Shown here one piece after another: positions 4,236 to 30,231 of a stretch of DNA of 64,000 nt (within the stretch, counting starts at the first letter, position 1; each line of letters starts with the position of its first letter). The notes beneath the pieces are model-generated. The model saw only the letters and a list, made by a program, of their open reading frames with translations. It was not told the DNA's origin and searched no databases. This DNA is from Macrostomum lignano (Eukaryota). Both the position numbers and the translations under genes were made by a program. The stretch covers positions 1-64,000 of the forward strand of contig NIVC01003680.1 of assembly GCA_002269645.1 (NCBI GenBank). The letters are read 5' to 3'.

Positions 4236-4700
4236 ATCGGCAACGCCAGTTCTGGCGCTCCGCCGGACAGACTCGTCCCCGGCCAGGCCCACCGGAGTCC
4301 AACCCGGCCCGGGCGGATGCCGAAACGGCCGCTGTCCGAAATTCACGTCCACAGTCTGGTCGCGGAGGCACACCACGGGATAATAAGTGGTGGAGTCGCC
4401 GCGGGCGGCAGGCGGCAGGGCATAGGCCTGGCCAAACGATTTGCCGTTCTTGGCGAACGCGATCGCCCCGGCGCCGAAGTCCAGGTAGCAGCCGATCACG
4501 TCGCCTCCGCTGTACGGCTCACCGTACACGTCAATCTGATCGCTGTGCATCTTCTTGCCCTGGCTGCCGGCCAGACCGAAGCCGTCCGGATCCGCGCCGT
4601 ACGCCCAGCCCTGGCTGTCCCGGCCGGCGTCCAAGCTGCCCGACTCGGTGGCCCAGCCGACTCGGGCGAGGGCGGCCGGCTGCGACTCCAGCGGCTCCGC
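4236..4700 (-). CDS. FERM-SPRY locus exon: C-terminal part of SPRY domain 2 (DDX1-type)
   Basis: ctccag|GCG acceptor, GAT|gtgag donor, 155 codons: ARVGWATESGSLDAG..GKKMHSDQIDVYGEPYSGGDVIGCYLDF..FAKNGKSFGQAY..YPVVCL..VNFG. The donor implies the gene continues beyond the LINE, out of the window. Confidence 0.9.
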
Positions 4701-4729
4701 CTGGAGTTGGAGCGGTCAAAATCAATTAA

Positions 4730-5810
4730 TCTACTCTACTCGGAGCCTATCTACCCTACTCGGAGCCTATCTACCCTACTCGGAGCCTATCTACTCTACT
4801 CGGAGCCTATCTACCCTACTCGGAGCCTATCTACCCTACTCGGAGCCTATCTACTCTACTCGGAGCCTATCTACTCTACTCGGAGCCTATCTACCCTACT
4901 CGGAGCCTATCTACCCTACTCGGAGCCTATCTACCCTACTCGGAGCCTATCTACTCTACTCGGAGCCTATCTACCCTACTCGGAGCCTATCTACTCTACT
5001 TGGAGCCTATCTACTCTACTCGGAGCCTATCTACCCTACTCGGAGCCTATCTACCCTACTCGGAGCCTATCTACTCTACTCGGAGCCTATCTACTCTACT
5101 CGGAGCCTAGCTACTCTACTCGGAGCCTATCTACTCTACTCGGAGCCTATCTACTCTACTCGGAGCCTATCTACTCTACTCGGAGCCATCTACTCTACTC
5201 GGAGCCTATCTACTCTACTCGGAGCCTAGCTACTTACTCGGAGCCTAGCTACTCTACTCGGAGCCTAGCTACTCTACTCGGAGCCTATCTACCCTACTCT
5301 GAGCCTATCTACTCTACTCGGAGCCTATCTACCCTACTCGGAGCCTATCTACTCTACTCGGAGCCTATCTACTCTACTCGGAGCCATCTACCCTATTCGG
5401 AGCCTAGCTACCCTACTCCGAGCCTATCTACTCTACTCGGAGCCATCTACCCTACTCGGAGTCTAGCTACTCTACTCGGAACAATCTACCCTACTCGGAG
5501 CCTATCTACTCTACTCGGAGCCTATCTACTCTACTCGGAGCCTATCTACTCTACTCGGAGCCATCTACCCTACTCGGAGCCTAGTACTCTACTCGGAGCC
5601 TAGCTACCCTACTCGGAGCCTATCTACTCTACTCGGAGCCTATCTACTCTACTCTGAGCCTATCTACCTTACTGGGAGCCTATCTAACCTACTGTGAGCC
5701 TATCTAACCTACTGTGAGCCTATCTAACCTACTGTGAGCCTATCTAACCTACTGTGAGCCTATCTACCCTACTGTGGGCCTATCTAACCTACTGTGAGGC
5801 TATCTACCCT
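4730..5810. repeat. 20-bp intronic minisatellite (ctcggagcctatctactcta)n
   Basis: Tandem units visible. Confidence 0.95.
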
Positions 5811-5890
5811 ACTCAGATTTATTTATCCTACTCTAGGCCTCTCTAACGGCACAGTTTTGAGACAGAAAATGCACACAAACATGTACGAAC

Positions 5891-6215
5891 CTCGTAATAG
5901 AAGCGGCCAGGCCCGCCGGCCACCGCTCGGACGCCTTTGGCGGCGCGGACGCCCTGCCAGCCGAAGCCGAGACGGCCCTGCGCCGAAGCTCCGTCAGGGC
6001 CAAGCGCCAGGCCCGGGCCAGTTACGTCGTGATGATTTAGGCGCCAGGCGCGCGGATTATCGGTGCGTTGGTTAACGGGCGCCAGGCCGGCCGGGCGCCA
6101 CGGGCCGCCGGGCAGGTGGCGCAGCGGCTGCGCCGGATCGTCGCCGAAGTTCCAGCGAAGATTGGCGCCGTTTCTAGCGCAGCCGGCCGGGAAGAAGGTC
6201 TCGGCGCGGAGATCC
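5891..6215 (-). CDS. FERM-SPRY locus exon: end of SPRY1 and start of SPRY2
   Basis: ctgcag|G GAT, GAG|gttcgt; phase 2 in, phase 0 out, matching both neighbours. DLRAETFFPAGCARNGANLRWNFGD..WRLNHHDV..WQGVRAAKGV..GRFYYE. Missed by the ORF track. Confidence 0.88.
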
Positions 6216-6359
6216 CTGCAGGTGGGCGGGGGTTGCAGGTGTACACGTGTAGCTTGCTTAGTCCGTCAATTCTGATCTCCTCATAATACTATCCATCCGC
6301 TCTTACTCAAAATCTATCCAATTATTATCGTGTCTCCATAAAATTTCATCAAGTTTTAA

Positions 6360-6770
6360 AACTCCATCTCACCCTAATCTTATGCTATCTCACTCAATCT
6401 CATCTTCATTTCTCGCACCAATCTTATCTTATCTCACATCAATCTCATCCTATCTCACATTAATCTCATCCTATCTCACACTAATCTCATCCTATCTCAC
6501 ACCAATCTCATCCTATCTCACACCAATCTCATCCTATCTCACACCAATCTCATCCTATTTCACACCAATCTCATCTTATGTCACCCCAGACTTATCTTAT
6601 CTCACATCAGTCTCATACTATCTCACCCCATTTCACGTATCTCATCTCAATATCATCCAATCTCACCCAATCTTACCCTATCTCACAAATGTCGCTCTTA
6701 TCTCACCCTATCTCGTATAAAATCACTCAATCTCACCGCATCTCACCTCAATCTAATAAAAATCTCCCCT
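6360..6770. repeat. Degenerate ~21-bp minisatellite (atctcatcctatctcacacca)n
   Basis: Tandem units visible. Confidence 0.85.
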
Positions 6771-7284
6771 AGCCATCTATTCAACACAAACACCGCTGAA
6801 ACTGTACAGCAGGGCTGACAGAGCACTTTATCAACAATTGTTAAACAAACAGTTTATTAGCTACTTGGCAAATTTCAGTCCCGTTATATCAATACTCGAT
6901 CGACTATATTAGGCCAGACAAAGAATAATTATAAGCATCCTATAAATAGTTAAAGCCAGACAGAAAAGCCGTTATTTTATTGAAAAAAACTGCAAAAACT
7001 ATAGAAACTGCATATGCATAAATCATACTGCACTGCCGGGCATGCACTTCCTGTCGCTTTGATCTGAAAGGCATATCATTATTATTGTTTCTGTTGTCTT
7101 TTTGGGCTCCAATTTATACAAACTCTGGCAATAAATTTTATTAGGTCAGAGCAGCGATTCAAAATGCAAACACCAATTCATAATAGGATTATTAAAATTT
7201 ATTGCCCCGCTTATTATAATATTGTTGGTGCGCTGGGGTCATAGAAAGTGTCATTAGCTAGACTAGCAGGTAAATAAATAAGGA

Positions 7285-8440
7285 CACGTAAGCAGGCGGC
7301 AGATAAGCAGGCAGGTAGATGAGCAGGCGAGTAGATAAGCAGGCGGGTAGATAAGCAGGCGTAGTAAGCAGGCAGGTAGATAAGCAGGCAGGTAGATAAG
7401 CAGGCGAGTAGATAAACAGGCGGGTAGATAAGCAGGCAGGTAGATAAGCAGGCAGGTAGATAAGCAGGCGAGTAGATAAGCAGGCGGGTAGATAGGCAGG
7501 CAGGTAGATAAGCAGGCAAGTAGAAAACAGGGTAGATAAGCAGGTAGATAAGCAGGCGGGTAGATAAGCAGGTAGATAAGCAGGCGGGTAGATAAGCAGA
7601 AAGGTAGATAAGCAGGCGGGTAGATAAGCAGGCAGGTAGATAAGCAGGCAAGTAGATAAGCAGGCGAGTAGATAAGCAGGCGGGTAGATAAGCAGGCAGG
7701 TAGATAAGCAGGCGAGTAGATAGGCAGGCAGGTAGATAAGCAGGCAAGTAGAAAACAGGGTAGATAAGCAGGTAGATAAGCAGGCAAGTAGATAAGCAGG
7801 CGAGTAGATAAGCAGGCGGGTAGATAAGCAGGCAGGTAGATAAGCAGGCAGGTAGATAAGGCGAGGTAGATAAGCAGGCGGTAGATAAGCAGGCAGGTAG
7901 ATAAGCAGGCAAGGTAGAAAAGCAGGGTAGATAAGCAGGTAGATAAGCAGGCGGGTAGATAAGCAGAAGGTAGATAAGCAGGCGGGTAGATAAGCAGACA
8001 GGTAGATAAGCAGCAGGTAGATAAGCAGCAGGTAGATAAGCAGGCGGGTAGATAAGCAGGTAGATAAGCAGGCGGATAGATAAGCAGGCAGGTAGATAAG
8101 CAGGCAGGTAGATAAGCAGATAGGTAGATAAGCAGGTAGATAAGCAGGCGGGTAGATAAGCAGGTAGATAAGCAGGCGGGTAGATAAGCAGGTAGATAAG
8201 AAGGCGGGTAGATAAGCAGGCGGGTAGATAAGCAGGTAGATAAGCAGGCGGGTAGATAAGCAGGTAGATAAGCAGGCGGGTAGATAAGCAGGCAGGTAGA
8301 TAAGCAGGCGGGTAGATACGCAGGTAGATAAGCAGGCAGGTAGATGAGCAGGCGGGTAGATAAGCAGGAAGGTAGATAAGCAGGCGGGTAGATAAGCAGG
8401 AAGGTAGATAAGCAGGCGGGTAGATAAGCAGGCATATAGA
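7285..8440. repeat. 12/16-bp minisatellite (gtagataagcaggc(g/a)g)n
   Basis: Tandem units visible. Confidence 0.95.
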
Positions 8441-8459
8441 TGAGCAGTGCGGAACTCAC

Positions 8460-9172
8460 CTATTCAGGCTGTAAGCCTGGCCCTGCTCGGCGCCATTCAC
8501 AGAGAACAGCGCCAGGCCGCTGTCCAGGTCCAGAGCGGCTCCGACAACGTCGCCCGGCCGCAGGCGGCAGCCGTAGTCTTCAACCTGGCCGGCCAAGCAC
8601 TTGGTGGCCTGTCGGCCGTCCGGCCCGCCGGCCCCAAACCCGAATCCGTGTCCGTCGGCGGCTCCGAGCCGAAGTCCAGCCGACGCCGTCGCCCAGCCGA
8701 TGCGAGCATCGACGTCGGCGTCCCGGTTGGCACCGTCGGGCACGTCGACAACGACCTCGAAGTACCACTGGCCGCCGTTTCTGACGCCGGAGTCGGCCCG
8801 AACGCCGAGCCAGTCGCCGCCCGGACAGGCGGCGGTCAGCAGCGGCGGTCGGCGAGTCTCGTCGCCATCGACTGTTTGGTCGGCGATCGCCACCGAGGCG
8901 CCGGCGCCGTCAACGTCGGCGTCCAGCGGCGTTAGGCACCACCGGCGCGGCCTGACGACTCCAGTTCGATGCGGCGATCGAACTGTTCTCGAGCTGGCAG
9001 AGTGGAGTGCTGGTGCTGCTGGTGCTGATAGTCCTGAGGTGTGCTCTGCGCCGGGTAGTAGCGGGAGGCCGTGGCCGCCGCGCTGCCGGTGCCGTTGAGA
9101 CCGGGGCCGCCCAGCTGCGGCTCGTAAGTGCTGAATGCGTCTTCTGAGCGGTGCGGGAATGGGGTGCCGGAC
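8460..9172 (-). CDS. FERM-SPRY locus exon: low-complexity linker plus SPRY domain 1 (frame ambiguity near 8945)
   Basis: gtcag|G acceptor, AAT AG|gtgag donor. WCLTPLD..DWLGVRADSGV..WYFEV..ARIGWAT..GFGFG..EDYG..GDVVGAALDLDSG..FSVNG..GQAY. Confidence 0.85.
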
Positions 9173-9733
9173 CTGACACAGACTCTGACTAGCTCAGTAC
9201 AGACTCTGACTAGCTCAGTACAAACTCTGACCAACTCAGTACAGACTCTGACTAGCTCAGTACAGACTCTGACTAGCTCAGTACAGACTCTGACCAACTC
9301 AGTACAGACTCTGACCACCTCAGTACAGATTCTGACCAGCTCAGTACAGACTCTGACTAGCTCAGTACAGACTCTGACTAGCTCAGTACAGACTCTGACC
9401 AACTCAGTACAGACTCTGACCAACTCAGTACAGACTCTGACCAACTCAGTACAGACTCTGACCAACTCAGTACAGACTCTGACTAGCTCAGTACAGACTC
9501 TGACTAGCTCAGTACAGACTCTGACCAGCTCAGTACAGACTCTGACCAGCTCAGTACAGACTCTGACTAGCTCATTACAGACTCTGACTAGCTCAGTACA
9601 GACTCTGAACAACTCATTACAGACTCTGACTAGCTCAGTACAGACTCTGACCAACTCAGTACAGACTCTGACTAGCTCAGTACAGACTCTGACCAACTCA
9701 GTACAGACTCTGACCAGCTCAGTACAGACTCAC
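9173..9733 (-). repeat. Intron composed entirely of a 21-bp repeat (gagctagtcagagtctgtact)n
   Basis: Runs from the donor gtgagtctgtact to the acceptor gagtctgtgtcag. Confidence 0.9.
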
Positions 9734-9896
9734 CCTTCTTTCGAAAGCTCTTGCGCATCCCGGGAGTGATGAGTGCCTCGGGCAGCGGCCCCAGAGTCTG
9801 GTCATTCATCTGGCCCTAGTGGGCCCGGTGTAGTTCCAATTGCGTTTGAATGTTCCCGGAATTAGCGGCTTAGCTGGCTTCTCTGGCGACTTGAGC
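9734..9896 (-). CDS. FERM-SPRY locus exon: FERM-adjacent (FA) region, with an in-frame TGA or frameshift at ~9808-9818
   Basis: ggcag|G CTC AAG, AAG G|gtgag. RLKSPEKP..KRNWNYTGPT resembles the band 4.1 FA motif (RYSGRTQ). Confidence 0.75.
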
Positions 9897-10259
9897 CTGC
9901 CAAAAATAGTACGGAGTGGTAGATGCCTGCGTTTATACATTCAGCTATACATACGAAATTTGATACTGGCTAAATCTATGCTAAATCAAGATGCTATTAA
10001 TAAAAGTGCACGCTCCTGATGCTTAAATTCCATGTTAAAAATCCTTATTTAAAGTCAATGCTCAATCAGGAAGCTACTACTTAAACTCTACTTAGTAAAA
10101 TATAGCATTATCAAAAGTCTATGTTTTATTCAAATGCTATTATTAGAAACTAGCAATCAGCGTCCCCGTTTAGGAGGAATAAACTAAATTTAGCTTCTGA
10201 CTTCAGCCTTAACATTTCAGCGATTCCCCAATAAATCTTTAATTTTTGCAATGACGCCT

Positions 10260-11000
10260 TTGTTTGACATGAGGCTTCTTCTATGTTTGACATGAGGCTT
10301 CTTCTATGTTTGACATGAGGCTTTTATGTTTGACATGAGGCTTCTTCTATGTTTGACATGAGGCTTCTTTTATGTTTGACATGAGGCTTCTTCTATGTTT
10401 GACATGAGGCTTCTTTTATGTTTGACATGAGGCTTCTTTTATGTTTGACATGAGGCTTCTTCTATGTTTGACATGAGGCTTCTTCTATGTTTGACATGAG
10501 GCTTCTTCTATGTTTGACATGAGGCTTTTATGTTTGACATGAGGCTTCTTTTATGTTTGACATGAGGCTTCTTCTATGTTTGACATGAGGCTTCTTCTAT
10601 GTTTGACACGAGGCTTTTATGTTTGACATGAGGCTTCTTTTATGTTTGACATGAGGCTTCTTCTATGTTTGACATGAGGCTTTTATGTTTGACATGAGGC
10701 TTCTTCTATGTTTGACATGAGGCTTCTTTTATGTTTGACATGAGGCTTCTTCTATGTTTGACATGAGGCTTCTTTTATGTTTGACATGAGGCTTCTTCTA
10801 TGTTTGACATGAGGCTTCTTCTATGTTTGACATGAGGCTTTTATGTTTGACATGAGGCTTCTTTTATGTTTGACATGAGGCTTCTTCTATGTTTGACATG
10901 AGGCTTTTATGTTTGACATGAGGCTTCTTCTATGTTTGACATGAGGCTTCTTTTATGTTTGATATGAGGCTTCTTTTGTGTTTGATATGACACTTTTATG
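10260..11000. repeat. 23-bp satellite (atgtttgacatgaggcttcttct)n
   Basis: Tandem units; related to the 47.6-50.6 kb array. Confidence 0.95.
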
Positions 11001-11009
11001 TTTTACGTG

Positions 11010-11475
11010 ACCTAACCCTTACCTAAACCCAAACCTGAACCTAAAACCTAAACCCAAACTAAACCCAAACCTGAACCTAAAACCTAAACCCAAACTAAAC
11101 CCAAACCTGAACCTAAAACCTAAACCCAAACTAAACCCAAACCTGAACCTAAAACCTAAACCCAAACTAAACCCAAACCTGAACCTAAAACCTAAACCCA
11201 AACTTAAACCCAAACCTAAACCCAAACTTAAACACAAGCCTAAACCTAAAACTTAAACCCAACCTAAACCTAAAATCTAAACCAAAACCTAAACCCAAAC
11301 CTAAACCCAAACCTAAACCCAAACCTAAACCCAAATCTAAACCCAAACCTAAACCCAAATCTAAACCCAAACCTAAACCCAAACCTAAACCAAACCTAAA
11401 CCCAAACCTAAACCCAACCATAAACCCAAATCTTAACCCAAACCTAAACCCAAACCCAGACCCAAACCCTAACCT
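11010..11475. repeat. Telomere-like variant repeat (cctaaa/cccaaa/ccctaa)n, interstitial
   Basis: Hexamer variants of CCCTAA. Confidence 0.85.
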
Positions 11476-11520
11476 AGCCGGCAGTCAATTGCCGAGCTGT
11501 CACTAATAAACCAGGCGCAC

Positions 11521-11942
11521 CTGAAGAATCCGTGATGCTCCACCACGGCCCGCCACAGCCGCTTCGCCAGTTTAGACGAAGCGCATCGAAATTCCACCAC
11601 CCGTTCACCGCGCCAGTCGGAATCGGCCGGTCGCAGGGCGATCCTCAGCGAGCTGCGCTTGTAGGACACCCGCATGATCTTCGGCCAGGAGAACCGGTTG
11701 ATCCGCAAGCTGTTGCGGTACACCAGCACGCCGCCGTGGTACACGCCGACGTAGATCTCATCTCCGCGACTGTCGCGAGCTTCGTGCATGTCAACGCCGT
11801 ACATTGCCAGCTTCTTGGCGTTCTGCAGAAAATGCTGATCAGCCTCTTCGGGCGTCATGCCGCTGTGCGATCGGTGCAAATCAATCACCCGCTCTTGGAG
11901 GTCGCGGTGTGCGCGGAACTCCTCCGGGCAGAATGGACAGTC
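11521..11942 (-). CDS. FERM-SPRY locus exon: FERM B/C lobes (protein 4.1/coracle type)
   Basis: gtcag|GAC, TTC AG|gtgcg. LQERVIDLHRSHSGMTPEEADQHFLQNAKKLAMYGVDMH..INRFSWPKIMRVSYKRS..AKRLWRAVVEHHGFFR. Confidence 0.95.
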
Positions 11943-12039: not shown

Positions 12040-14270
12040 GGGATGCTTCAGTGCCGGAGTGTTCAGATGCTTCAGTGCGGAGTGTTCAGATACCTCAGTG
12101 CCTGAGTGTTCAGATACTTCAGTGCCTACTTCAGTGCCTGAGTTTCAGATACTTCAGTGCCTGAGTGTTCAGATACTTCAGTGCCTGAGTGTTCAGATAC
12201 TTCAGTGCCTGAGTGCTCAGATACTTCAGTGCCTGAGGTTCACATACTTCAGTGCCTGAGTGTTCAGATACTTCAGTGCCTGAGTGTTCAGATACTTCAG
12301 TGCCTGAGTGTTCAGATACTTCAGTGCCTGAGTGTTCAGATACTTCAGTGCCTGAGTGTTCAGAAACTTCAGTGCCTGAGTGTTCAGATAATTCAGTGCT
12401 TGAGGGTTCAGATACTTCAGTGCCTGAGTGTTCAGATACTTCAGTGCCTGAGTGTTCAGATACTTCAGTGCCTGAGTGTTCAGATACTTCAGTGCCTGAG
12501 TGTTCAGATACTTCAGTGCCTGAGTGTTCAGATACTTCAGTGCCTGAGTGTTCAGAAACTTCAGTGCCTGAGTGTTCAGATAATTCAGTGCTTGAGGGTT
12601 CAGATACTTCAGTGCCTGAGTGTTCAGATACTTCAGTGCCTGAGTGTTCAGATACTTCAGTGCCTGAGTGTTCAGATACTTCAGTGCCTGAGTGTTCAGA
12701 TACCTCAGTGCCTGAGTGTTCAGATACCTCAGTGCCTGAGTGTTCAGATACTTCAGTGCCTGAGTGTTCAGATACTTCAGTGCCTGAGTGTTCAGATACT
12801 TCAGTGCCTGAGTGTTCAGATACTTCAGTGCCTGAGTGTTCAGATACTTCAGTGCCTGAGTGTTCAGAAACTTCAGTGCCTGAGTGTTCAGATAATTCAG
12901 TGCTTGAGGGTTCAGATACTTCAGTGCCTGAGTGTTCAGATACTTCAGTGCCTGAGTGTTCAGATACTTCAGTGCCTGAGTGTTCAGATACTTCAGTGCC
13001 TGAGTGTTCAGATACCTCAGTGCCTGAGTGTTCAGATACCTCAGTGCCTGAGTGTTCAGATACTTCAGTGCCTGAGTGTTCAGACACTTCAGTGCCTGAG
13101 TGCTCAGATACTTCAGTGCCTAAGGGTTCAGATACCTCAGTGCCTGAGGGTTCAGATACTTCAGTGCTGAGGGTTCAGATACTTCAGTGCCTGAGTGTTC
13201 AGATACTTCAGTGCCTGAGGGTTCAGAAACTTCAGTGCCTGAGTGTTCAGAAACTTCAGTGCCTGAGTGTTCAGATACTTCAGTGCCTGAGTGTTCAGAT
13301 ACCTCAGTGCCTGAGTGTTCAGATACTTCAGTGCCTGAGTGTTCAGATACTTCAGCGCCTGAGTGTTCAGATACCTCAGTGCCTGAGTGTTCAGATACTT
13401 CAGTGCCTGAGTGTTCAGATACTTCAGTGCCTGAGTGTTCAGATACCTCAGTGCCTGAGTGTTCAGATACTTCAGTGCCTGAGTGTTCAGATACCTCAGT
13501 GCCTGAGTGTTCAGATACCTCAGTGCCTGAGTGTTCAGATACCTCAGTGCCTGAGTGTTCAGATACTTCAGTGCCTGAGTGTTCAGATACTTCAGTGCCT
13601 GAGTGTTCAGATACTTCAGTGCCTGAGTGTTCAGATACTTCAGTGCCTGAGTGTTCAGATACTTCAGTGCCTGAGTGTTCAGATACTTCAGTGCCTGAGG
13701 GTTCAGATACTTCAGTGCCTGAGTGTTCAGATACTTCAGTGCCTGAGTGTTCAGATACTTCAGTGCCTGAGTGTTCAGATACTTCAGTGCCTGAGTTTTC
13801 AGATACTTCAGTGCCTGATGGTTCAGATACTTCAGTGCCTGAGTGTTCAGATACTTCAGTGCCTGATGGTTCAGATACTTCAGTGCCTGAGTGTTCAGAT
13901 ACTTCAGTGCCTGAGGGTTCAGATACCTCAGTGCCTGAGTGTTCAGATACTTCAGTGCCTGAATGCTCAGATACTTCAGTGCCTGAGGGTTCAGATACTT
14001 CAGTGCCTGAGTGTTCAGATACTTCAGTGCCTGAGAGTTCAGATACTTCAGTGCCTGAGTGTTCAGAAACTTCAGTGCCTGAGTGTTCAGATGCTTCAGT
14101 GCCTGAGTGTTCAGATACTTCAGTGCCTGAGTGTTCAGATACCTCAGTGCCTGAGGTTCAGATACCTCAGTGCCTGAGTGTTCAGATACCTCAGTGCCTG
14201 AGGGTTCAGATACCTCAGTGCCTGAGTGTTCAGATACCTCAGTGCCTGAGGGTTCAGATACCTCAGTGCC
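12040..14270. repeat. 24-bp minisatellite (cagtgcctgagtgttcagatactt)n
   Basis: Roughly 90 tandem units, intronic. Confidence 0.97.
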
Positions 14271-15089
14271 TTGTCCATTCCCAAGTGTCAGGCGGCGTGT
14301 CCAGTGCCCAGCATTCATTCAGTTCCGAAATGTTCGCACAATCCAGCTTAGACATTTAAAAAAAGTTCCTCAAATATTAAGCTGACAAATTCCTAGCTAA
14401 AGTAATAGGAATAAGAAGGCCAGAGTTGTAGGGGGGATTTTCTTCCCTTGCATGCCAGGCCAGACAAGGCAGCAGTGGATGGCGGGCGGCAGCTGGTTTA
14501 CATGGCCCAGACAGAGACGGGCATGGGTGATTTGAATCCACCGCTGCTCTGCTCCCCTCATCAACCAGCCCTGATCTGGAGAGGATTATCTAAGCTTGAA
14601 AAATCCAAGCCTACAGTTTATAGGCAATTAAAATGACAACAGAGCTGCTCATTCGTCACTTTCTTATCTGCAATTCATCCCTCAACAGTCCATAAAAAAG
14701 GTCCTCATAAATTTTCTATAAAAGTACAGATCGTACTCTGAAATAAAGTCACGTGACTTGCTGGCTCTCCTACTCGGGCGGGCACAGGCAACCAATCATA
14801 ACTAATCAAGATTAATGAAGTCAATTAAATTTTCTCTTGTCTGTTTCGAGTCTCAGCTCAAGTATTCTTTTATAAGAAAAAGCATAGAAAGCATCACCAT
14901 ATGCCCGTGAGCTGAGTTCAGTACTCAATATCAACTTGATTTGTATAACTGCTTGCTTTAAAAAGGTATAGTATTTCTAGCTCGTAGAGCAATTGCAGAA
15001 TCGTTATTATCTTCATTATCGTTTGCAAAAGAATCAAAATTTGTTTCCTCTTAAGATCATCTTTAATTTTCATTTCCTTCCCTGTTCCT

Positions 15090-16460
15090 CTCACTACCCG
15101 CTCCTCTTCCTCACTGTTCCTCTTCCTCACTGTTCCTCTTCCTCACTGTTCCTCTTCCTCACTGTTCCTCTTCCTCACTGTTCCTCTTCCTCACTGTTCC
15201 TCTTCCTCACTGTTCCTCTTCCTCACTGTTCCTCTCCCTATCCGCCCCCCCTTTCTCACTGTTCCTCTCCCTACCCGCCCCCCTTCCTCACTTTTCCTCT
15301 CCCTACCCGCTCCTCTTCCTCACTGTTCCTCTCCCTACCCGCTCCTCTTCCTCACTGTTCCTCTTCCTCACTGTTCCTCTTCCTCACTGTTCCTCTCCCT
15401 ATCCGCCCCCCCTTTCTCACTGTTCCTCTCCCTACCCGCCCCCCCCTTCCTCACTTTTCCTCTCCCTACCCGCTCCTCTTCCTCACTGTTCCTCTCCCTA
15501 CCCGCTCCTCTTCCTCACTGTTCCTCTCCCTACCCGCTCCTCTTCCTCACTGTTCCACTCACTACCCGCTCCCCTTCCTACCTTTTCCTCTCCCTACCCG
15601 CTCCCCTTCCTACCTTTTCCTCTCCCTACCCGCTCCCTTCCTACCTGTTACTCTCCCTACCCGCTCCCCTTCCTACCTGTTCCTCTTCCTACCCGCTTCT
15701 CTTCCTCACTGTTCCTCTCCCTACCCGCCCCTTCCTCACTGTTCCTCTCCCTACCCGCTCCTCTTCCTCACTGTTCCTCTCCCTACCCGCTCCTCTTCCT
15801 CACTGTTCCTCTCCCTACCCGCTCCTCTTCCTCACTGTTCCTCTCCCTACCCGCTCCTCTTCCTCACTGTTCCTCTCCCTACCCGCTCCTCTTCCTCACT
15901 GTTCCTCTCCCTACCCGCCCCCTTCCTCCCTGTTCCTCTCCCTACCCGCTCCCCTTCCTACCTTTTCCTCTCCCTACCCGCTCCCCTTCCTCACTGTTCC
16001 TCTCCCTACCCGCCCCTTCCTCACTGTTCCTCTCCCTACCCGCTCCCCTTCCTACCTTTTCCTCTTCCTACCCGCTCCTCTTCCTCACTGTTCCTCTTCC
16101 TCACTGTTCCTCTTCCTCACTGTTCCTCTCCCTACCCGCCCCTTCCTCACTGTTCCTCTCCCTACCCGCTTCCTTCATACCTGTTCCTCTCCCTACCCGC
16201 TCCCCTTCATACCTTTTCCTCTCCCTACCCGCTTCCTTCATACCTGTTCCTCTCACTACCCGCTCCTCTTCCTCACTGTTCCTCTCCCTACCCGCTCCCC
16301 TTCCTCACTGTTCCTCTCCCTACCCGCTTCCTTCATACCTGTTCCTCTCCCTACCCGCTCCCCTTCATACCTTTTCCTCTCCCTACCCGCTTCCTTCATA
16401 CCTGTTCCTCTCACTACCCGCTCCTCTCCCTCAGTTCCTCTCCCTACCCGCTTCCTTTCC
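15090..16460. repeat. CT-rich compound minisatellite (ttcctctccctacccgctcctcttcctcactg)n
   Basis: Tandem units visible. Confidence 0.93.
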
Positions 16461-16535: not shown

Positions 16536-16768
16536 CTGCAGATAGGTGACATCGTTAAACCGCGGGTCAGACGGATCGTAGTCGCCAATCTCCGACTGCA
16601 CAACGTAACTGCCGAGCACTATATAGGTAGTAAACGAGCAGGGCAAAATGTCGGCCATAAGATTCTGGCGAATCTGCAGCGCCATGTAGTACCGGGTGAG
16701 ATTGTCGCGCAGATTCTCCGGATCTGGCGGATAGAATTTCACCATGAACTCCAGCTTCCATTCGTTCT
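16536..16768 (-). CDS. FERM-SPRY locus exon: FERM A/B lobe
   Basis: ctcag|AG AAC, CAG|gtggg. EWKLEFMVKFYPPDPENLRDNLTRYYMALQIRQ..LPCSFTTYIVLGSYVVQSEIGDYDP. Confidence 0.95.
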
Positions 16769-17470: not shown

Positions 17471-18149
17471 GGCTTACAAGCTTATCACGCAATTCTCCAT
17501 CATAGACACACAAACGCAATATTATTAAGTACAACACTATTTCTGACAAGCACCTAACCATTATTCATCACCTGAACTCTAAGGCTTAAGGCAGGTGAAG
17601 ACTAAGCAATTGAGATAAAAAATACATAAAATTTCCCCAAATCCTGGGCATAAATCGCATTAGGATCAGATGATGCGTCATCGCTGAACTTGAAACCCCA
17701 TTGCCAAGGGTATAGTAAATATCAGGTAAGAAGGCATTCGATTCCCCTATACCTACTACTGCTTTCGATCCTACCGCCGCCAGCCTAGTAACCATGGCAA
17801 CAACAATATTGCGGTTTTGAAAAGGCCAAGAATTTGCCCCGCTCCCACTCAAGAGGATTTTTCTAATGAAATAATCGGATAGGGATATCCTTGAGGGAAG
17901 AAAATCAGGGGTTGGGGGCGAAATTCTGCTTCGAATCCTATCCACACCTGCCAAATGTTTTTGCGTAATGCGCTGCGGGCCCAGCTTCCCACAGCTCCAT
18001 CATCTGCTGCAGCAGGTTTCCCGGAATATGGCTTCGCATCCGCACCGAATTCCGACTTTTTGAAGTTTATGGTTTTTATTGGAATTGTGCCTGCTTTTGT
18101 TAGACTCTGAACTTCGATAAGCTTGACACTAAGATATCGAAAATTCACA

Positions 18150-19700
18150 AGCTCCATAATTCACAAGCGCGATAATTCACAAGCTCGATAATTCACAAGC
18201 TTGATAATTCACAAGCTCGATAATTCACAAGCTTGATAATTCATAAGCTTGATAATTCACAAGCTCGATAATTCACAAGCTTGATAATTTACAAGCTCGA
18301 TAATTCACAAGCTTGATAATTCATAAGCTTGATAATTCACAAGCTCGATAATTCACAAGCTCGATAATTCACAAGCTTGATAATTTATCACAAGCTCGAT
18401 AATTCACAAGCTTGATAATTCACAAGCTCGATAATTTATCACAAGCTCGATAATTCACAAGCTCGATAATTCACAAGCGCGATAATTCACAATCTCGAAA
18501 ATTCACAAGCTCCATAATTCACAAGCGCGATAATTCACAAGCTCGATAATTCACAAGCTCGATAATTTACAAGCTCGATAATTCACAAGCTTGATAATTC
18601 ACAAGCTTGATAATTTATCACAAGCTCGATAATTCACAAGCTTGATAATTCACAAGCTCGATAATTTATCACAAGCTCGATAATTCACAAGCTCGATAAT
18701 TCACAAGCGCGATAATTCACAAGCTCGATAACTCACAAGCTCGATAATTCACAAGCGCGATAATTCACAAGCTCGATAATTCACAAGCTTAATAACTCAC
18801 AAGCTCGATAATTCACAAGCTTGATAATTTACAAGCTCGATAATTCACAAGCTTGATAATTCACAAGCTCGATAATTTATCACAAGCTCGATAATTCACA
18901 AGCTCGATAATTCACAAGCGCGATAATTCACAAGCTCGATAATTCACAAGCTCGATAATTCACAAGCTCGATAATTCACGAGCGCGATAATTCTCAAGCG
19001 CGATGATTCACAAGCTCGATAATTCACAAGCTCGATAATTCACAAGCGCGATAATTGACAAGCTCGATAATTCACAAGCGCGATAATTCTCAAGCGCGAT
19101 GATTCACAAGCGCGATAATTCACAAGCTCGATAATTCACGAGCGCGATAATTCTCAAGCGCGATGATTCACAAGCTCGATAATTCACAAGCTCGATAATT
19201 CACAAGCGCGATAATTGACAAGCTCGATAATTCACAAGCGTGATAATTCTCAAGCGCGATGATTCACAAGCTCGATAATTCACAAGCTCGATAATTCACA
19301 AGCGCGATAATTGACAAGCTCGATAATTCACAAGCGCGATAATTCACAAGCTCGATAATTTATCACAAGCTCGATAATTCACAAGCTTGATAATTCACAA
19401 GCTCGATAATTTATTACAAGCTCGATAATTCACAAGCTCGATAATTCACAAGCGCGATAATTCACAAGCTCGATAATTCACAAGCGCGATAATTCACAAG
19501 CTTGATAATTTATCACAAGCTCGATAATTCACAAGCTTGATAATTCACAAGCTCGATAATTTATTACAAGCTCGATAATTCACAAGCTCGATAATTCAGA
19601 AGCGCGATAATTCACAAGCTCGATAATTCACAAGCTCGATAATTCACAAGCGCGATAATTCACAAGCTCGATAATTCATCACAAGCTCGATAATTCATTC
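18150..19700. repeat. 16-bp minisatellite (aagctcgataattcac)n
   Basis: Tandem units visible. Confidence 0.95.
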
Positions 19701-20149: not shown

Positions 20150-20720
<571 letters not shown>

Positions 20721-21207: not shown

Positions 21208-21250
21208 TGCCAATCTGCTTGTTCAGCCGTCTGTCATTGTAGAGCCAGTG
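21208..21250 (-). CDS. FERM-SPRY locus 43-bp micro-exon (HWLYNDRRLNKQIG)
   Basis: ttttcag|CAC TGG, GGC A|gtaagc. Supplies the conserved FERM WL..K.I.KQI segment; phases fit both neighbours. Confidence 0.9.
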
Positions 21251-22270: not shown

Positions 22271-22949
22271 ATCTTAGTGCCCGCTATCTGAAGCCCTGGG
22301 AATCATCCCAGCGAGCCAATGAATAACCCCCGGCAAACAATGGGCGAATCCCACCTACCAATATCCGGTCAGATTAATAATATTCCTCATCAACTCAAAT
22401 TCTTTTTGAGCCCGCCCCCGCGCCACCTGACAGCCAATATAATTATCTCACACCTCTATTAGGCCAGAAAAATCCCACCAGGAAGTCAGCGTTGCTCGCG
22501 CTGGGCTTAAAAAATGCTCGAATAAAAAGGAAGAAAAACTGAGGCCAGGAAATATGTATATATATTTCCGCATATATATATATGCGGTCAGGGGTCACGT
22601 GACCTGCAGCTGGGTTGGCCTCATCAGGGGAGATTGGGCGGCTTGAGGCAGAGTTTTGGGGGAGTTTTCCCGTTAATTGGCAATCACGGTGGAGAAAGAG
22701 AGGAATGGAAAAAAGTTCAAAAGAGGGGGACCAGAGGGCAGTGGCGAGAGGGTTTCTCTGCTTCTTTCCTTCCCCGCCAATGGCGCTCGTCAATCTATTA
22801 TAGAACCAACTCCCAAAAATATCGCATTGAAAGTGCCGCCAGATCTGTCCGTTTCCTTTTTACAGTCCGTTTGCTCAGATAGAGGGAGATTATGTACTTT
22901 TGCATGGACCAGAAATAAAAATTAATTTGGAAACCCGAGGGAGCGCAGG

Positions 22950-23630
22950 AGGGCGCCAGAGTGGGTATGGAAGAGGCGCCAGGAGGAGTATGGAAGGGGG
23001 CGCCAGAGTGGGTATGGAAGAGGCGCCAGGAGGGGTATGGAAGGGGGCGCCAGAGTGGGTATGGAAGAGGCGCCAGGAGGAGTATGGAAGGGGGCGCCAG
23101 AGTGGGTATGGAAGAGGCGCCAGGAGGAGTATGGAAGGGGGCGCCAGGGTGGATATGGAAGAGGCGCCAGGAGGAGTATGGAAGGGGGCGCCAGGGTGGA
23201 TATGGAAGAGGCGCCAGGGTGGGTATCGAAGGGGGCGCCAGGGTGGGTATCGAAGGGGGCGCCACGGTGGGTATCGAAGGGGGCGCCAGGGTGGGTATCG
23301 AAGGGGGCGCCAGGGTGGGTATCGAAGGGGGCACCAAACGGACACCAATGGGGCGCCAGGATGGGTATCAAAGGGAGCGCCAAAGAGACAAGAGGGCGCC
23401 AGGATGGGTATGGAAGGGGGCGCCAGGGTGGGTATAAAAGGGGCGCCAGGGTGGGTATCGAAGGGGGCGCCAAACAGACAAGACGGCGCCAGGATGGGTG
23501 TGGAAGGGGCGTCAAACGGACACTAATAGGGCGCCAGGAAGGGAGCAGAAGGAGGCGCTAAGGCATGGGAAGATGGCGCCAAGAAGGGCTATAAAGGACA
23601 CCAGAAAGGGAGCGGAGGGAGGCGCCAGAA
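22950..23630. repeat. GC-rich compound minisatellite (ggcgccagg..gtatggaag)n
   Basis: Tandem units visible. Confidence 0.9.
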
Positions 23631-23697
23631 AATGTGCGGAAGGAAGGATGCAAAGCAAATGTACTATTATATAGTTAACAAGCAATGCCCAACTCAC

Positions 23698-23802
23698 AAA
23701 AATGTGCGTAGAGTCCCGATAGCACAGGCCGAAGTATTCTTTCTCGCGCAGACAGAGAAACTTGCAGGTCTCGTCGAACAAATCCTGCGCTTTGGAGGCC
23801 GG
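23698..23802 (-). CDS. FERM-SPRY locus exon: FERM N lobe
   Basis: cgcag|CCG, TTT|gtgag. PASKAQDLFDETCKFLCLREKEYFGLCYRDSTHIF (35 codons). Confidence 0.93.
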
Positions 23803-23960
23803 CTGCGATCAAATAGAAAGAAGAAGAGGGCAAGAAAAAATCCATCAATGAAATATTGGGTAAACGGAAATAGATCAATTTCCTGGGAAACTTCTTTTGT
23901 TAAATTAGGCAATCCAAAAAAGTGCATACTGAATAATTAGAAAAGCATTTTATTGCTCAC

Positions 23961-24311
23961 GTCAACTTCAAAGGAATTAACCGATCCGTCCAGCATCACA
24001 ACCAGGCACTCGCGCATCTTCACCGAACCCAGGCGCCGAATGCCGCCGCCGCCTCCCTCTGACTGCCTCTGCAGTGTCGGCTGCATAGTGGCGCCCTGGT
24101 CGCGCAGTGTGTAATAATCTCGCTTGGAGATCGTGTCCGCCTCGCCGACTCGGCTATCGCTGTGAGGCAGCACCTGCTGCTGCTGCTGCTGCGGAGGCGG
24201 CTGCTGAGGCTGAGGATGACGAGGCTGCACTTCTTCAGTGTCATTTTCTGTGGCCTGAGCTGCCTGAACAGCGGGTTCGCTACTGCCGCTGGCCTGAAGC
24301 TGGGGTTCCTC
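23961..24311 (-). CDS. FERM-SPRY locus exon: Gln/Pro-rich N-terminus and start of FERM
   Basis: cccag|GAG GAA, GAC|gtgag; 117 codons ending MRECLVVMLDGSVNSFEVD. Confidence 0.88.
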
Positions 24312-26329
24312 CTGGGATGCAGAACATTGAAATTAAATCAATTATAAAAAGTTATAAAATATGGCTTAATTATCATACCGAAAAAAATCTCTATAAACTT
24401 TTTGCTTTTAGCCACTATTATCTACATGTATGACTATATCTCTACTTAATTTCAAAATCTGTCTATAAAAAATTAAAGGTTGGATAAGATCCAAATTTCT
24501 AGTCCTATTGTTGTATTGGGATCCAAATCTAGACAATTTAGCTCTTATCCAACTTACTCTTAGCTATTATTATTACTATCATGAATTGTATCTCTATAAA
24601 TAATTGATGTTTCTTGAGATAATTCTTGTTAAAAAATTCTTATTAAATCAAGTCCAATTAGTGATTCAGCTAGGATATAAAGATCTAATTGGTCATAGTA
24701 TCAATTTATTATATGAATCTATATAAGACAAAGAAAAAAAGGGTTTCAAACTAAAAGCAACCCATTATATGGTTAGCTTATTTAATAGTCTCAATTTGTT
24801 TATAGCAATTACCTTTATAATATATTCATTATATATTTCTTGTCAATATTATCAGAAGACTATCATAAGATATATCCTTATAAATATAAGATATAAGCTT
24901 AAGTTAATGTTTGTCTTATTAATATTCTTTAGTTTTGCATTACAAATCAAATAAATTTTTATGAACTAAATTGTTATTGGTATATTCCAATAAATATAAG
25001 ATAGAATATTAGTTTGATTTAAATATAGCATAATTCAAATATTTTTTTCATTTGAAAAATATCTCTATTTAATAAAATTATCATTTCCATTGATTGTAAA
25101 AAATCTAAATTCAATGATTGAAATTTGGAATACATTTTTTTCTATCAATATGGTAACTATTTAAGCAATTTGGCTACAATATTTTTTGAATTGAATAGTA
25201 TTTTGTACTAATAAATTCCCAAAGATATTCATAGAGTCACTTGAACAAAAACTTTTTTCAAAAGCAATTTTAACATAAAAATTTTACGATAATAATTATT
25301 TTGATAGAAAATGTTCAATTATAAACTGAATCCTCTAATTAATAGAGCACCTTAAAGATTGCAAAATTCTTATTTAAACTTCACCTTTATAGTTAGTTCA
25401 ATAGTTAGAAAGGAGGTTCAATTCCTATGAACTTAAATTTATTGCAAAAAATATTCATTTAAATTATCAAACAAGCGACAAGTGCTTCTTAGGTAATGAT
25501 CAAGTATAATAACAAGTATCAAGTAAGGTATTGGTTAATTAATAAAAGTTATTTTATTTATTTGTTATTTGAATCAACCAAAGCAAATTTAAAGAACTAA
25601 TTAAAATGAACTAAATTAACTGAAACCTAATTATGATTTAGGCGCCTGATTTTGATTCCTCCCCCCCCACTTCAAACCCTCGGGAAGAAGCATTGTATTG
25701 TGTTTAAATACGACTTTAAATTGTGAATAATTTGCTGACGATAAAAAATTATTTGAATTTTTAAACATTCTGCAATAGTAATATTGCAAAATCTAGAAAC
25801 CTTCTAGAAATAAAAAGCCCCACGCCCTAGACTAGCTCGGTATTGGCGAGAATTAAAATATCTTTCGAGGAAAAAAACAGATTTTCAAATTATCTGATTT
25901 TTGCGAGTTATCACTTTATTGTCGTAAATTACGATGCTAAATAAAGGTTACCAAAATCTTCGTCACACCTGACCTTGTCGCACAAATAGTATTAGCAGCT
26001 CGTAATGGGTACTATTATTACTACTAAGCTACATTTTGTAATACGCTCGTAGTATTAGTTGTTATTATGTTCACCACAACTCCTTAAATAGGCCTTTTTA
26101 AAACACTAACTAGTGTGCAGTGTAAGGATTCATCATTTTCGCCTGTTTTATTTCAATCAGGTAGGAGTCCTAAATACAGAAGGACTGAATAATTTCTTAT
26201 TTTCTTTATTTAATTTACTTTTGCTGATTAAACATTTTTTTATTAGAGGCAGGGGGGTTGTGTGCACCCTGGCGCACTTTAAGCGACATTGGCACACAAC
26301 CGGCGAGAGGCATTACTGCCCATTCCGCC

Positions 26330-26600
26330 GACTCCCCTGAGCAGGCATACAAGCGCGCGGATACGTACGCAGGCACACACTCACACAGGAGTGTACAGCG
26401 GCCCTAACTTTATATTATCGTTAGGCATGTACACTTCACTGCGCCTTGGGGGGGTTGGCCCTCAAGGCCGTTAATTGCACGAGCAGAGCCAAGCCGAGAT
26501 TCCAATTCAGCCCCAAATTAATGTGACTGCACTTGGAATCGAGCCTGGGTCGCTTCGCTGGCACACCAGAGCAGCTGCGCTACCGCTGGGCTACGGCCCC
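26330..26600 (-). mobile_element. tRNA-derived SINE copy
   Basis: Reverse strand has A-box TAGCCCAGCGG and B-box GGCTCGATTCC; body gccgctgtacactcctgtgtgag..ctcagggg is shared with the copy at 60.0-60.2 kb. Confidence 0.65.
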
Positions 26601-28739
26601 AACCTGATTAAACATGCTTATCATAAAAAAGTCACACTGTTTGATTTGAGGCTTACTGTGTACACGTACCTGTCTTGCAACACCTCACAAAACGCGTCGA
26701 TTATTCGCAAAAAATAATAGCGTTTAGTTCTGCCTATTACTATACATCGACATATTAAATAGATTATTTTCTAAACATTCTAATAAGGAATATTTTCACT
26801 TAAATCATTCTTAGTCAAGAGTTCGTCTTCCTCTATTCAGTGCGACGTTCGATCATAGAGCCCCAAAGAGCGTTTGTTTCTCTTTTTTGGCTATCTCTCA
26901 ACTGGAACAGCACCGACGACAGTCGACTCGGCCAATTTCGTCTCAAGGGTTTTCGAAGACTTACTGAAGGCGAATGGTACGATCATTGACAGTTTCAATT
27001 TTACCATTCTTAAGCAACTCTAATATTTCGCTGAAAGGAGTAATCGAAGGTCGAGTTGATGGAGTCCCCATGGATCGCTCTCAGAAACGGTTACGATCAT
27101 TCCTGGGAGCCCCTGTGCAATAAAAATCCTCAGAGCGTACATGATTGACACCGCACGCGCTGACTTTACATCAGCGGAGTTGATGCTTACACCCGCGATC
27201 GGTACTCGATTGTCACCTGCTGTATAGTGCCTTCCTATTTAATGTTTCCAATTAACGGCGTCAGGATGATGACTGCATCATGATCGAATGCTGGAAGAGA
27301 CGAGTTGAGGATTCACAAGTAGCTCCTCAGGTTTTCCCCCAAGTCAATTGACCGGCAGCGATATCGCAAATCGAACATATTCGCAACAGAGTCCATAGTC
27401 TCATGGTTTCATCCAGCTGTTATATGTACCGGTAGGTTCAGATCAATATAGCAGCTCCGCCAAGGTGAATGTCAGAGGCCATGAACAAAGTCAGCAGCGC
27501 TGATGAAGTATGAATTGGGTTGACAAAGGCCACACTGATCGAGGCACATTTACTACATGTACGAGTGCATGTATTCATAAATAACATCTGGTGTGTACTG
27601 ATCAAATTACTGTAGCGCTTATGGAAAAAATCAGACCTTCTGGCAGAATCATGAATGTCTCAATGTCTGGGGGAGTGGAAACGCGCATGCAGATCTTCGT
27701 TTGAAAAGGCGCAGCGCAGAAATTACCGTTGCAAGGTGCATCGAATTTTGTGCATATAAATTTTGAGCCAAAAGACATTGTCAGCTTAATTCAAGTAGTC
27801 TTTGAAGTTTTTGCAACACTTACACAATTTACACAACAACTTAAATACTGCAATCGTAAAAGTACATGTATACATACGCTCGTAAAAGCTACTTATTGGA
27901 TAAACTGTGCAGGTATTCATGGAAAGGTGCAGAAAAAACTTCGGCTATGCCAGAATGGAGCGTGTCAAATTCCAATATTCATATTGATGTTTCAAGTCTG
28001 GACGAAGCAGATTGGGTAAAGAGCATCGCGGAAAAAATTTTAGTTTCGATTGAGATGAAATCGTGAGACCCGAGAAGGCATAGCAGTTGCTTTGTAATAG
28101 TTTGCTCCCCAATCTTGATTGAAACTCGACGGCTACTTTCTATATTTAAAGTCCACGAGGCCCTCAGCCCCCCGCTTTGCCTCCATCCGCCCGCCTGCTC
28201 AGCATCCCCAAATTCCTCCTGGGGGATCGGGATGAGGCTGCAGACTGGTGGAATCGGTCGAGGAGAGAAGAGGGGAGGACGGGAGCAGCCGACGGGAAAT
28301 TGATTGCCAGACCCGTGGTCGTCGTCATCAACATTTTCTTGATTTTATTTTTCCCAGTTCTGCCCAGTCCGCAGTACTAGTCCTCCCAAATTCCCCCTTC
28401 GCGTCATCAATCGAGTCGGTCTATTTTGTTTCTAGCTCGTACATGAATGTTACTTTCAGTTCTTTCTTCCCTGGTGATCAGCGTCTACACTGTACGTTGC
28501 ACTGCATTTTAATTGCTTTCGGCTTGTGAGTGAATACTCACATAAGAATTAACGCTGTAAAATTGACATTGAATTTGTAATGTAGCTCCTAGGCTACATA
28601 AAGATCTTATAGTACGTCGACAAAGCTTCACCCTTTAGCTGACAACCATTTCCTAACTGTATAGACTGACAGACTGACCTACAGTTTTACTTACAATTCC
28701 ACCTGCTATGATAATCTGGCCTACTTTTCTGACTTATAA

Positions 28740-29360
28740 TCTGACCTGCTGATCAATCTGACCTGCTGATCAATCTGACCTGCTGATCAATCTGACCTGC
28801 TGATCAATCTGACCTGCTGATCAATCTGACCTGCTGATCAATCTGACCTGCTGATCAATCTGACCTGCTGATCAATCTGACCTGCTGATCAATCTGACCT
28901 GCTGATCAATCTGACCTGCTGATCAATCTGACCTGCTGATCAATCTGACCTGCTGATCAATCTGACCTGCTGATCAATCTGACCTGCTGATCAATCTGAC
29001 CTGCTGATCAATCTGACCTGCTGATCAATCTGACCTGCTGATCAGTCTGACCTGCTGATCAATCTGACCTGCTGATCAATCTGACCTGCTGATCAATCTG
29101 ACCTGCTGATCAATCTGACCTGCTGATCAGTCTGACCTGCTGATCAATCTGACCTGCTGATCAATCTGACCTGCTGATCAATCTGACCTGCTGATCAGTC
29201 TGACCTGCTGATCAATCTGACCTGCTGATCAATCTGACCTGCTGATCAATCTGACCTGCTGATCAATCTGACCTGCTGATCAATCTGACCTGCTGATCAA
29301 TCTGACCTGCTGATCAATCTGACCTGCTGATCAATCTGACCTGCTAATCAATCTGACGCA
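28740..29360. repeat. 17-bp minisatellite (ctgacctgctgatcaat)n
   Basis: Near-perfect tandem units. Confidence 0.97.
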
Positions 29361-29468
29361 CTGATCAACATTGGCTAACAGTAATCAGACCTCAACGCTA
29401 TAATAGAGCTTCAACAGCTGATAAAAGCCTATTGAACACATGAACCATCTTGCTAATTAAGAACTCAC

Positions 29469-29706
29469 ATTATGCAGCTCGTAGTTCCTGTGCAAGAAGC
29501 CGTGACTGAGCGGCCTGGCTGGTCGGCAGAATTCGCGAAACAGACGGTACTCGGGTATGACCTCGCATACTGAAGCGCACGACGACTGCGACCGCGACTG
29601 CGACCGAGTCGGATTGTCGATGCTACGCGACCAGACCAGTCGAAACGGCTCATGCTGCTGGCCATCAGCGGCATCTGTGGGAGTCGGCTGCTGGCTACAG
29701 CTGACG
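29469..29706 (-). CDS. Probable upstream exon of the FERM-SPRY locus (Ser/Gln-rich)
   Basis: gttcgcag|C GTC, AAT|gtgag; phase 0 end matches the 24311 exon; GC-rich and open; no recognisable domain. Confidence 0.55.
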
Positions 29707-30037
29707 CTGCGAACAAATTCGATTGCGCTCACAAATCGCCGCATTTGAATACACCACGCTGCATTATAAATGATGATGCTTCCAATGCATATGCATGCTG
29801 TGCTCAAAGCCTTCAAGGCGCTTTCGCTGACGTAAAACTTTTCTGTCACTCAGGAAACCTGTTGCTCTGTTAAGTTTGATCATGAAATTTTGTTCCAATT
29901 TGGCTACAACCGTTGACCAATGCGAGCTTTGCAATAAATGCATATAAGACTATACTATATGCGCTTCGACACTCGTCTCAGTAACTCTCTACATGCATAG
30001 AGTAGGTCACTTCGGCCACTCAGATTCTGCGCTTTAC

Positions 30038-30231
30038 CTCTGGCAACGAATGGCCATTGGTTTCTGCAGTTGCTGGATAACGGCGATCGACTGGGCTGCA
30101 TGGACCTCGGGCTTGCTCGCGGCTACTCTGGTAGACGATGCAGCTGAAAGGCCGGGGTGCTTATAGACAGAATTACTGACCCTAAGGCAACGCTGCTCCC
30201 ATTTTACTCTCAATAACAACGCTGTGTGCAT
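30038..30231 (-). CDS. Possible first coding exon of the FERM-SPRY locus
   Basis: CAG AG|gtaaag phase-2 donor matches the 29706 acceptor; start position uncertain. Confidence 0.4.

Follow-up and report, generated by a model that had tools for sequence, protein, structure and literature searches.

A protein 4.1 variant with two DDX1-type SPRY domains in Macrostomum lignano and other flatworms

What kind of gene joins a membrane-docking FERM domain of the protein 4.1 type to two SPRY domains like the one found in the helicase DDX1? The question is raised by a stretch of 64,000 nucleotides from Macrostomum lignano (GenBank assembly GCA_002269645.1, contig NIVC01003680.1, positions 1 to 64,000; hereafter the window), whose minus strand carries such a chain of exons. 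In animals, the membrane skeleton and the junctions between cells are organised by proteins of the 4.1 family, whose middle region varies most between lineages. An initial annotation, made from the letters of the window, took the chain for a lineage-specific cortical adaptor. We find that the locus is probably one paralogue of a flatworm-wide linker of the 4.1/coracle type, in which an inserted SPRY pair separates the FERM domain from a degenerate C-terminal domain (CTD).

Exons and domains of the gene

Nine minus-strand exons can be joined between positions 24311 and 4236, with AG before and GT after each one. Once two single-nucleotide repairs are made, they give an open frame of 931 residues, a conceptual protein whose domains follow each other in the order FERM_N, FERM_M, FERM_C, linker, SPRY1 and SPRY2. 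Pfam recognises SPRY (E = 7.2e-33, in two stretches), FERM_M (1.4e-21), FERM_C (7.7e-21) and FERM_N (6.1e-16) in the joined protein; the separate exon translations also yield FERM_N, FERM_M, FERM_C and two SPRY stretches. The phase-compatible chain proposed initially is borne out in its AG/GT borders and long frame, with the qualification that it needs one-nucleotide repairs at 9815 and ~8955. At each exon end named there (11521, 9734, 8460, 5891 and 4236) the GT donor is exact, and no exon lacks its AG acceptor. Between the window exons and two M. lignano entries in the databases, P0001 and P0006, identity is 97–100%, except for the FERM_M/C and FA exons, where the model of P0006 is garbled by frame errors; the DNA is therefore that of the free-living flatworm M. 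lignano.

The first recognisable coding exon (23961–24311), located by tblastn with P0006 and P0002, holds an N-terminal region with the flatworm-conserved motif SKRDYYTLRDQG and the start of FERM_N. It is followed by a FERM_N exon, PASKAQDLFDETCKFLCLREKEYFGLCYRDSTHIF, at 23698–23802 (Pfam FERM_N at 4.1e-05 alone; 100% identical to P0006; AG and GT borders), and by a 43-nucleotide micro-exon at 21208–21250, HWLYNDRRLNKQIG plus one nucleotide, which alignment with P0006 places at the end of FERM_N. The junction of the micro-exon, GGC A/AG AAC, reads G K N and agrees with P0006. The first half of FERM_M lies at 16536–16768 (Pfam FERM_M 1.6e-08; 97% identical to P0006), its second half together with the complete FERM_C at 11521–11942 (FERM_M 3.8e-10, FERM_C 7.7e-21; donor at 11520).

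Four exons come after the FERM domain. At 9734–9896 lies a post-FERM exon with the remnant LKSPEKPAKPLIPGTFKRNWNYTGPTR at the position of FA; its conserved frame shifts by one nucleotide at 9815. The exon at 8460–9143 encodes a Gln/His-rich linker and most of SPRY1 (99–100% identical to P0001; Pfam SPRY 3.8e-09), with a second one-nucleotide shift at ~8955–8957, immediately before RPRRW. The exon at 5891–6215 (98% identical to P0001; AG and GT borders) completes SPRY1 and, after the inter-domain linker, opens SPRY2 as far as GRFYYE; the remainder of SPRY2 lies at 4236–4700 (Pfam SPRY 1.2e-15; 99% identical to P0001), where a GTGAGC donor ends the exon.

The gene is incomplete in the window at both ends. 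The exon at 23961–24311 is preceded on its 5' side by an AG acceptor, and ahead of the SKRDYYTLRDQG motif it offers no ATG in frame, so that one or more 5' exons must be missing. The first coding exon was not found between 24.3 and 36 kb, where similarity to paralogue N-termini and scanning for ATG...GT gave chance-level matches only, such as 'DDDDHG' at 28329–28312 (E = 5.9). The upper limit of 30231 that had been drawn for the gene is not retained: homology supports no exons in the span 24312–30231, and many other start codons could be chosen just as arbitrarily as the ATG at 30231. At the other end, the donor of the last exon had been taken as a sign that the gene may continue outside, rightly so. 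P0001 runs 228 residues (471–698) past the sequence ...TGVAD at this terminal donor, and because that part has no counterpart in the window, the coding sequence must extend beyond position 1, the gene leaving at the left edge. In the paralogue P0002, at least four further exons, spread over ~5.7 kb, follow the equivalent donor.

The FERM part scores 315.7 bits with 4.1B (band 4.1-like 3) and 286.8 with 4.1R, ahead of FARP1/2 (~190), PTPN3 (165) and ERM/merlin (~110). Its top matches outside flatworms are all protein 4.1 or band 4.1-like 1–3, at 42–49% identity, and FERM_N, FERM_M and FERM_C each stand above the Pfam cut-off in the test for the 4.1 family. These matches assign the FERM domain to the 4.1 subtype, as first proposed.

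Both SPRY domains find their best match in the Protein Data Bank in the SPRY domain of DDX1 (4xw3). For SPRY2, which carries the DDX1-like signature quoted in the initial annotation, the match has E = 5.5e-32, the next being the ryanodine receptor at 4e-11; for SPRY1 the values are 7.1e-16 and 5.6e-09. AlphaFold models the pair as two beta-sandwiches with a mean predicted local distance difference test (pLDDT) of 84.1 and a predicted template-modelling score (pTM) of 0.73. The best structural match of the model is again 4xw3, with a template-modelling score to the target of 0.86–0.88, a root-mean-square deviation of 1.6–1.8 Å and 36% identity. In an exhaustive profile search with the SPRY pair over 1.84 billion representatives, true DDX1 helicases (DEAD, SPRY and Helicase_C) come next after the flatworm family with both halves of the profile. 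It took the place of a search in a word-indexed collection, which returned six matches and overlooked known members; GC-rich words of low complexity had probably crowded its list of candidates.

Sequence and predicted fold both assign the two SPRY domains to the DDX1 type. True DDX1 proteins match the window through their SPRY part alone (residues 66–272), helicase motifs being absent from the window, in agreement with the first inspection. DEAD and Helicase_C domains are also absent from all family members scanned with Pfam; the gene is not a DDX1, despite some database names.

The family in flatworms

More than 20 flatworm species already have a protein of this design, FERM followed by two SPRY domains, in the sequence databases. 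M. lignano itself has at least three diverged paralogues that share it: the window copy, P0002 and P0004. Among trematodes it is found in Schistosoma spp., Trichobilharzia, Clonorchis, Fasciola, Paragonimus, Dicrocoelium, Echinostoma and Calicophoron; among cestodes in Mesocestoides and Schistocephalus; among monogeneans in Cichlidogyrus and, by a fragment, in Protopolystoma. The window exons are 28–46% identical to the trematode, cestode and monogenean members, and collinear with them. A second, longer and divergent paralogue group exists in the cestodes Mesocestoides, Hydatigera and Spirometra (P0154, P0161 and P0149; FERM and two SPRY domains in 1417–1850 residues). One cestode member of this second group, from Sparganum proliferum, bears the name 'positive regulation of protein localization to cell cortex'.

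All matches to the whole SPRY pair at E<1e-99 are from flatworms, and all but one of them also carry FERM, the exception being a 663-residue fragment from Paragonimus. The whole design is conserved across Macrostomorpha, Trematoda, Cestoda and Monogenea. The architecture had been called lineage-specific; it belongs to the phylum as a whole and not to a narrow lineage within it. The databases have it catalogued in many taxa, an outcome that the initial annotation had itself named as refuting its reading. Whole-word and phrase searches of the literature found no paper describing the FERM and double SPRY family.

Members go under varied database names, 'Band 4.1-like 3', 'DDX1' and 'SPRY domain containing' among them, of which the 'DDX1' label is wrong. 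A vesicle proteome of Schistosoma mansoni (PMC5818524) has separate entries for a 'SPRY domain containing protein' and a 'Band 4.1-like protein', which may both stem from an old model that cut this gene in two.

Could gene predictors have fused two neighbouring genes, one 4.1-like with the FERM exons and one with the SPRY exons? Some annotations look that way: an older split model of S. mansoni, XP_018655143.1, is a 624-residue 'SPRY domain containing protein', GAA30691.2 of Clonorchis is annotated 'DDX1, partial', and P0001 contains the SPRY half alone. Against this, two independent Logan contigs of 3.5 kb assembled from sequencing runs, L001 and L002, each hold one uninterrupted FERM and SPRY open reading frame of 1088 residues with untranslated flanks, and a third, of 3975 nucleotides, encodes a 1105-residue member of the Dicrocoelium cluster. 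Since the genomic genes span 20–23 kb with many introns, contigs of 3.5–4 kb behave as spliced transcripts. Moreover, the window shows no stop, start or phase gap between the FERM_C exon and the SPRY1 exon, the order of domains is identical in more than 20 species of four flatworm classes, and a motif like that of the 4.1 CTD follows the SPRY pair. That two genes were fused by prediction is thus extremely improbable. As had been proposed, FERM and SPRY appear joined in one gene, and a fusion artefact is very unlikely.

Intron positions differ between the paralogues, as seen by comparing the M. lignano locus L003 (NIVC01003199.1) with the window. P0002 has a single exon for residues 183–403, where the window gene has an intron, and the breaks between its SPRY exons fall at residues 749 and 920, compared with ~661, 769 and 920 in the window gene.

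The genome of M. lignano is duplicated, and the two frame disruptions raise the question of whether the window copy is a surplus paralogue in decay. At 9815 the sequence runs ...ACT AGG GCC AGA TGA, with GGG where GGGG would give TR-GQMNDQ; at ~8955 the frame breaks between RRIELE and RPRRW, one base being missing. A pseudogene would be consistent with these breaks in the conserved frame, with the start-codon exon that was not found in the 24.3–36 kb search, with introns filled by a retrotransposon and long minisatellites, and with the window copy being the most diverged of the three paralogues (47.7% identity to P0002 in the C-terminal half). Both single-base losses, however, lie at short G runs, as errors of a long-read assembly would, and the near-identical proteins (97–100% over shared exons) read across them, P0006 at the first site and P0001 at the second. 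Every splice site is intact, and the window copy retains all 67 of the columns that are invariant across eight aligned flatworm SPRY pairs. The retroelement in the window is likewise split over many frames, so an indel-rich assembly fits equally well. We regard a pseudogene as improbable. Because relatives read through both sites and the 67 invariant columns are kept, we favour assembly indels or recent damage specific to this copy over an old pseudogene.

The C-terminal tail and the origin of the SPRY pair

The SPRY domains are not the end of the protein: full-length orthologues extend ~200–300 residues past the pair, in a part that lies outside the window. Flatworm tails terminate in a motif such as DLALEQAILQTTHLNPHTAVL, canonical 4.1 CTDs in DHDRALAEAIQEATMMNPDMTVEKI; as patterns, D-x-ALxxAIxxTxLNPxxxV in flatworms compares with DHDxALAxAIxEAxxxNPDMTV in canonical 4.1 proteins. 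An hhalign comparison of the tails with the 4.1 CTD gives P = 2e-4 over 52 columns, versus P = 0.71 for reversed tails. With a hidden Markov model of the CTD, eight orthologues match at their extreme C-terminus with 5–12 bits, the best of 1100 shuffles reaching 5.2. Because a CTD-like motif follows the SPRY pair in full-length orthologues, these comparisons are suggestive of an insertion into a 4.1 protein, not of a replacement of its C-terminus.

The region just after FERM_C had been read as an FA region. A profile match of 26.7 bits at this place was rejected: its score came from HHxFFR, the last residues of FERM_C, and falls to the shuffle range without them. A collinear remnant, LKSPEKPAKPLIPGTFKRNWNYTGPTR, is nonetheless visible at the FA position. 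The SAB domain (PF04382) is absent from all flatworm members scanned with Pfam. This does not exclude membership of the 4.1 family, since SAB is, to our knowledge, also absent from other invertebrate 4.1 proteins.

Several points weigh against our reading of the locus as a flatworm 4.1 linker with an inserted SPRY pair. Pfam FA (PF08736) finds no match even at E<=10, and a custom FA profile deprived of its FERM_C end scores 8.8 bits, within the range of shuffles (best 9.9), so the FA region could not be upheld. Pfam 4_1_CTD has no match in full-length orthologues at E<=1, and the CTD homology is weak, with an hhalign probability of 47%. The two frameshifts interrupt the conserved frame of this copy, and the model has neither its start-codon exon nor its C-terminal exons. 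We read the family as the flatworm orthologue of 4.1/coracle, but it could instead be a paralogue. What the SPRY pair does we purely infer, and the ligands of the DDX1 SPRY surface are not transferable to it. Finally, the restriction to flatworms is not airtight, because a collinear SPRY pair is carried by one protein labelled as that of a copepod, P0132, considered below.

Where does the SPRY pair come from? A neighbour-joining tree of the full data places the SPRY1 group of flatworms beside their SPRY2 group, with the DDX1 group adjoining, and each of the two flatworm groups includes sequences of Macrostomum and of neodermatans. One capture and one tandem duplication before the split of Macrostomum and neodermatans would fit this topology. 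Bootstrap values are low: 42% for SPRY2, 8% for SPRY1 and 4% for SPRY1 and SPRY2 alone as a group, the last staying at 16% or less even with the cestode paralogues and P0184 added. The topology was consequently set aside as support for a tandem duplication of a DDX1-type SPRY. That a DDX1 SPRY was recruited and then duplicated, as initially proposed, is plausible, though the bootstrap support is weak.

The same bootstrap values are compatible with another origin, in which the pair was not copied from DDX1 and descends from an older multi-SPRY protein that is not confined to flatworms. The exhaustive search indeed found non-flatworm proteins with two to six tandem DDX1-like SPRY domains. A further case is P0132 (ADD38214.1), a cDNA-derived protein of 304 residues labelled 'DDX1 [Lepeophtheirus salmonis]', a copepod. 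Its SPRY pair is 31–34% identical to the flatworm family and collinear with it across the inter-domain linker, scoring 153 bits versus 94 to DDX1. A search of the 5.8-billion-protein collection, sea-louse genomes included, found no relatives of P0132: it is either a contaminant, perhaps from a flatworm living on sea lice, or a sign of the SPRY pair outside flatworms. Besides, FERM is absent from all eight non-flatworm multi-SPRY proteins scanned with Pfam, and the full-data tree places SPRY1 and SPRY2 side by side next to DDX1. On balance we consider descent from an older multi-SPRY protein unlikely.

Surroundings of the gene and meaning of its design

The DNA of the window is eukaryotic, with abundant minisatellites. 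Arrays with units of 12–47 bp, between 3745 and 23562, fill nearly every intron of the 4.1-SPRY gene, for example at 12127–14271 (24 bp x 89), 18137–19697 (16 bp x 96) and 15118–16460 (32 bp x 42). These intronic arrays generate many long spurious open reading frames on both strands. Between the exon end at 4236 and the left edge of the window lie a minisatellite and, at 27–3600 on the plus strand, the remnant of a retrotransposon without long terminal repeats (Pfam RVT_1 1.3e-23, RNase_H 2.2e-13). It sits antisense to the gene, inside the intron that follows the exon ending at 4236, and its coding region is broken across many overlapping frames.

Upstream of the 4.1-SPRY gene and on the opposite strand, an F-box gene occupies 31924–32999 (plus strand; F-box-like 5.3e-09); a 297-residue open reading frame without Pfam match comes after it. 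Farther on, a 220-residue open reading frame at 53133–53795 on the minus strand matches 2',3'-cyclic nucleotide 3'-phosphodiesterase (CNPase; 3.3e-26). Exons of a Mind bomb-type E3 ligase follow at 57551–61362 on the plus strand, recognised by their domain matches: two MIB_HERC2 and a ZZ at 57551–58318, a Mind bomb SH3 repeat at 59458–60090 and ankyrin repeats at 60808–61362.

Compared with protein 4.1 (EPB41, EPB41L1-3; Coracle in Drosophila), the flatworm family has much in common: a FERM domain 45–49% identical, with 4.1B and 4.1R as the best matches of solved structure, a proline/lysine stretch after FERM_C at the FA position, a tail ending in the CTD-like D-x-AL..AI..T.LNP...V, and a similar overall size of ~1100–1200 residues. 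It differs in the two SPRY domains (~400 residues) between FERM and CTD, in the failure of the Pfam FA, SAB and 4_1_CTD models to match, and in the replacement of the serines of FA (GSKFRYSGRT).

With the DDX1 SPRY domain (4xw3) the pair shares the N-terminal extension strand W-x-[LM]-[NS] and the C-terminal FxFPP tail; in DDX1, however, a single SPRY lies within RecA domain 1 of a helicase, whereas flatworms have a tandem pair in a FERM protein. Several SPRY domains per chain, acting as interaction modules, are also known from the ryanodine receptor (SPRY1-3). Unnamed multi-SPRY proteins from protists and metagenomes (an EF-hand with three SPRY domains; ARM/CUB with four) have DDX1-like SPRY domains as well, but their similarity to the flatworm pair is far lower, with E ~1e-45 versus <1e-99 within the family.

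The FERM domain of protein 4.1 binds the tails of membrane proteins and phosphoinositides, and SPRY domains are protein-binding beta-sandwiches. By analogy, the FERM lobes of the flatworm protein would anchor it at the cell cortex or at (septate) junctions by binding phosphoinositides and the cytoplasmic tails of membrane proteins. Its SPRY pair would then serve as a set of protein-binding platforms that recruit a partner to the FERM-docked site. In this arrangement the pair would occupy the place of the SAB of vertebrate 4.1 proteins, or of the long variable linker of other invertebrate ones.

We describe the design best as an undescribed protein 4.1 variant characteristic of flatworms. Since its sequences are already public, what is gained is the recognition and description of the family, not its discovery. 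Proteomic and comparative work can be led astray by the inconsistent labels and the split older models.

That free-living and parasitic flatworms alike have kept a folded SPRY pair suggests a cortical interaction specific to the phylum. The hosts of parasitic flatworms are without this design, so the interaction would be of practical interest if it proved essential. We also put forward, as a tentative and rather doubtful scenario, that an early flatworm with a single 4.1/coracle gene acquired the pair by one insertion into that gene, and that its descendants have retained it. If so, it would be a shared derived character of Platyhelminthes, or at least of Rhabditophora; their membrane skeleton and septate junctions would have gained a partner-binding module absent from host animals, offering a helminth-specific handle on the cortex of tegument or epithelium.

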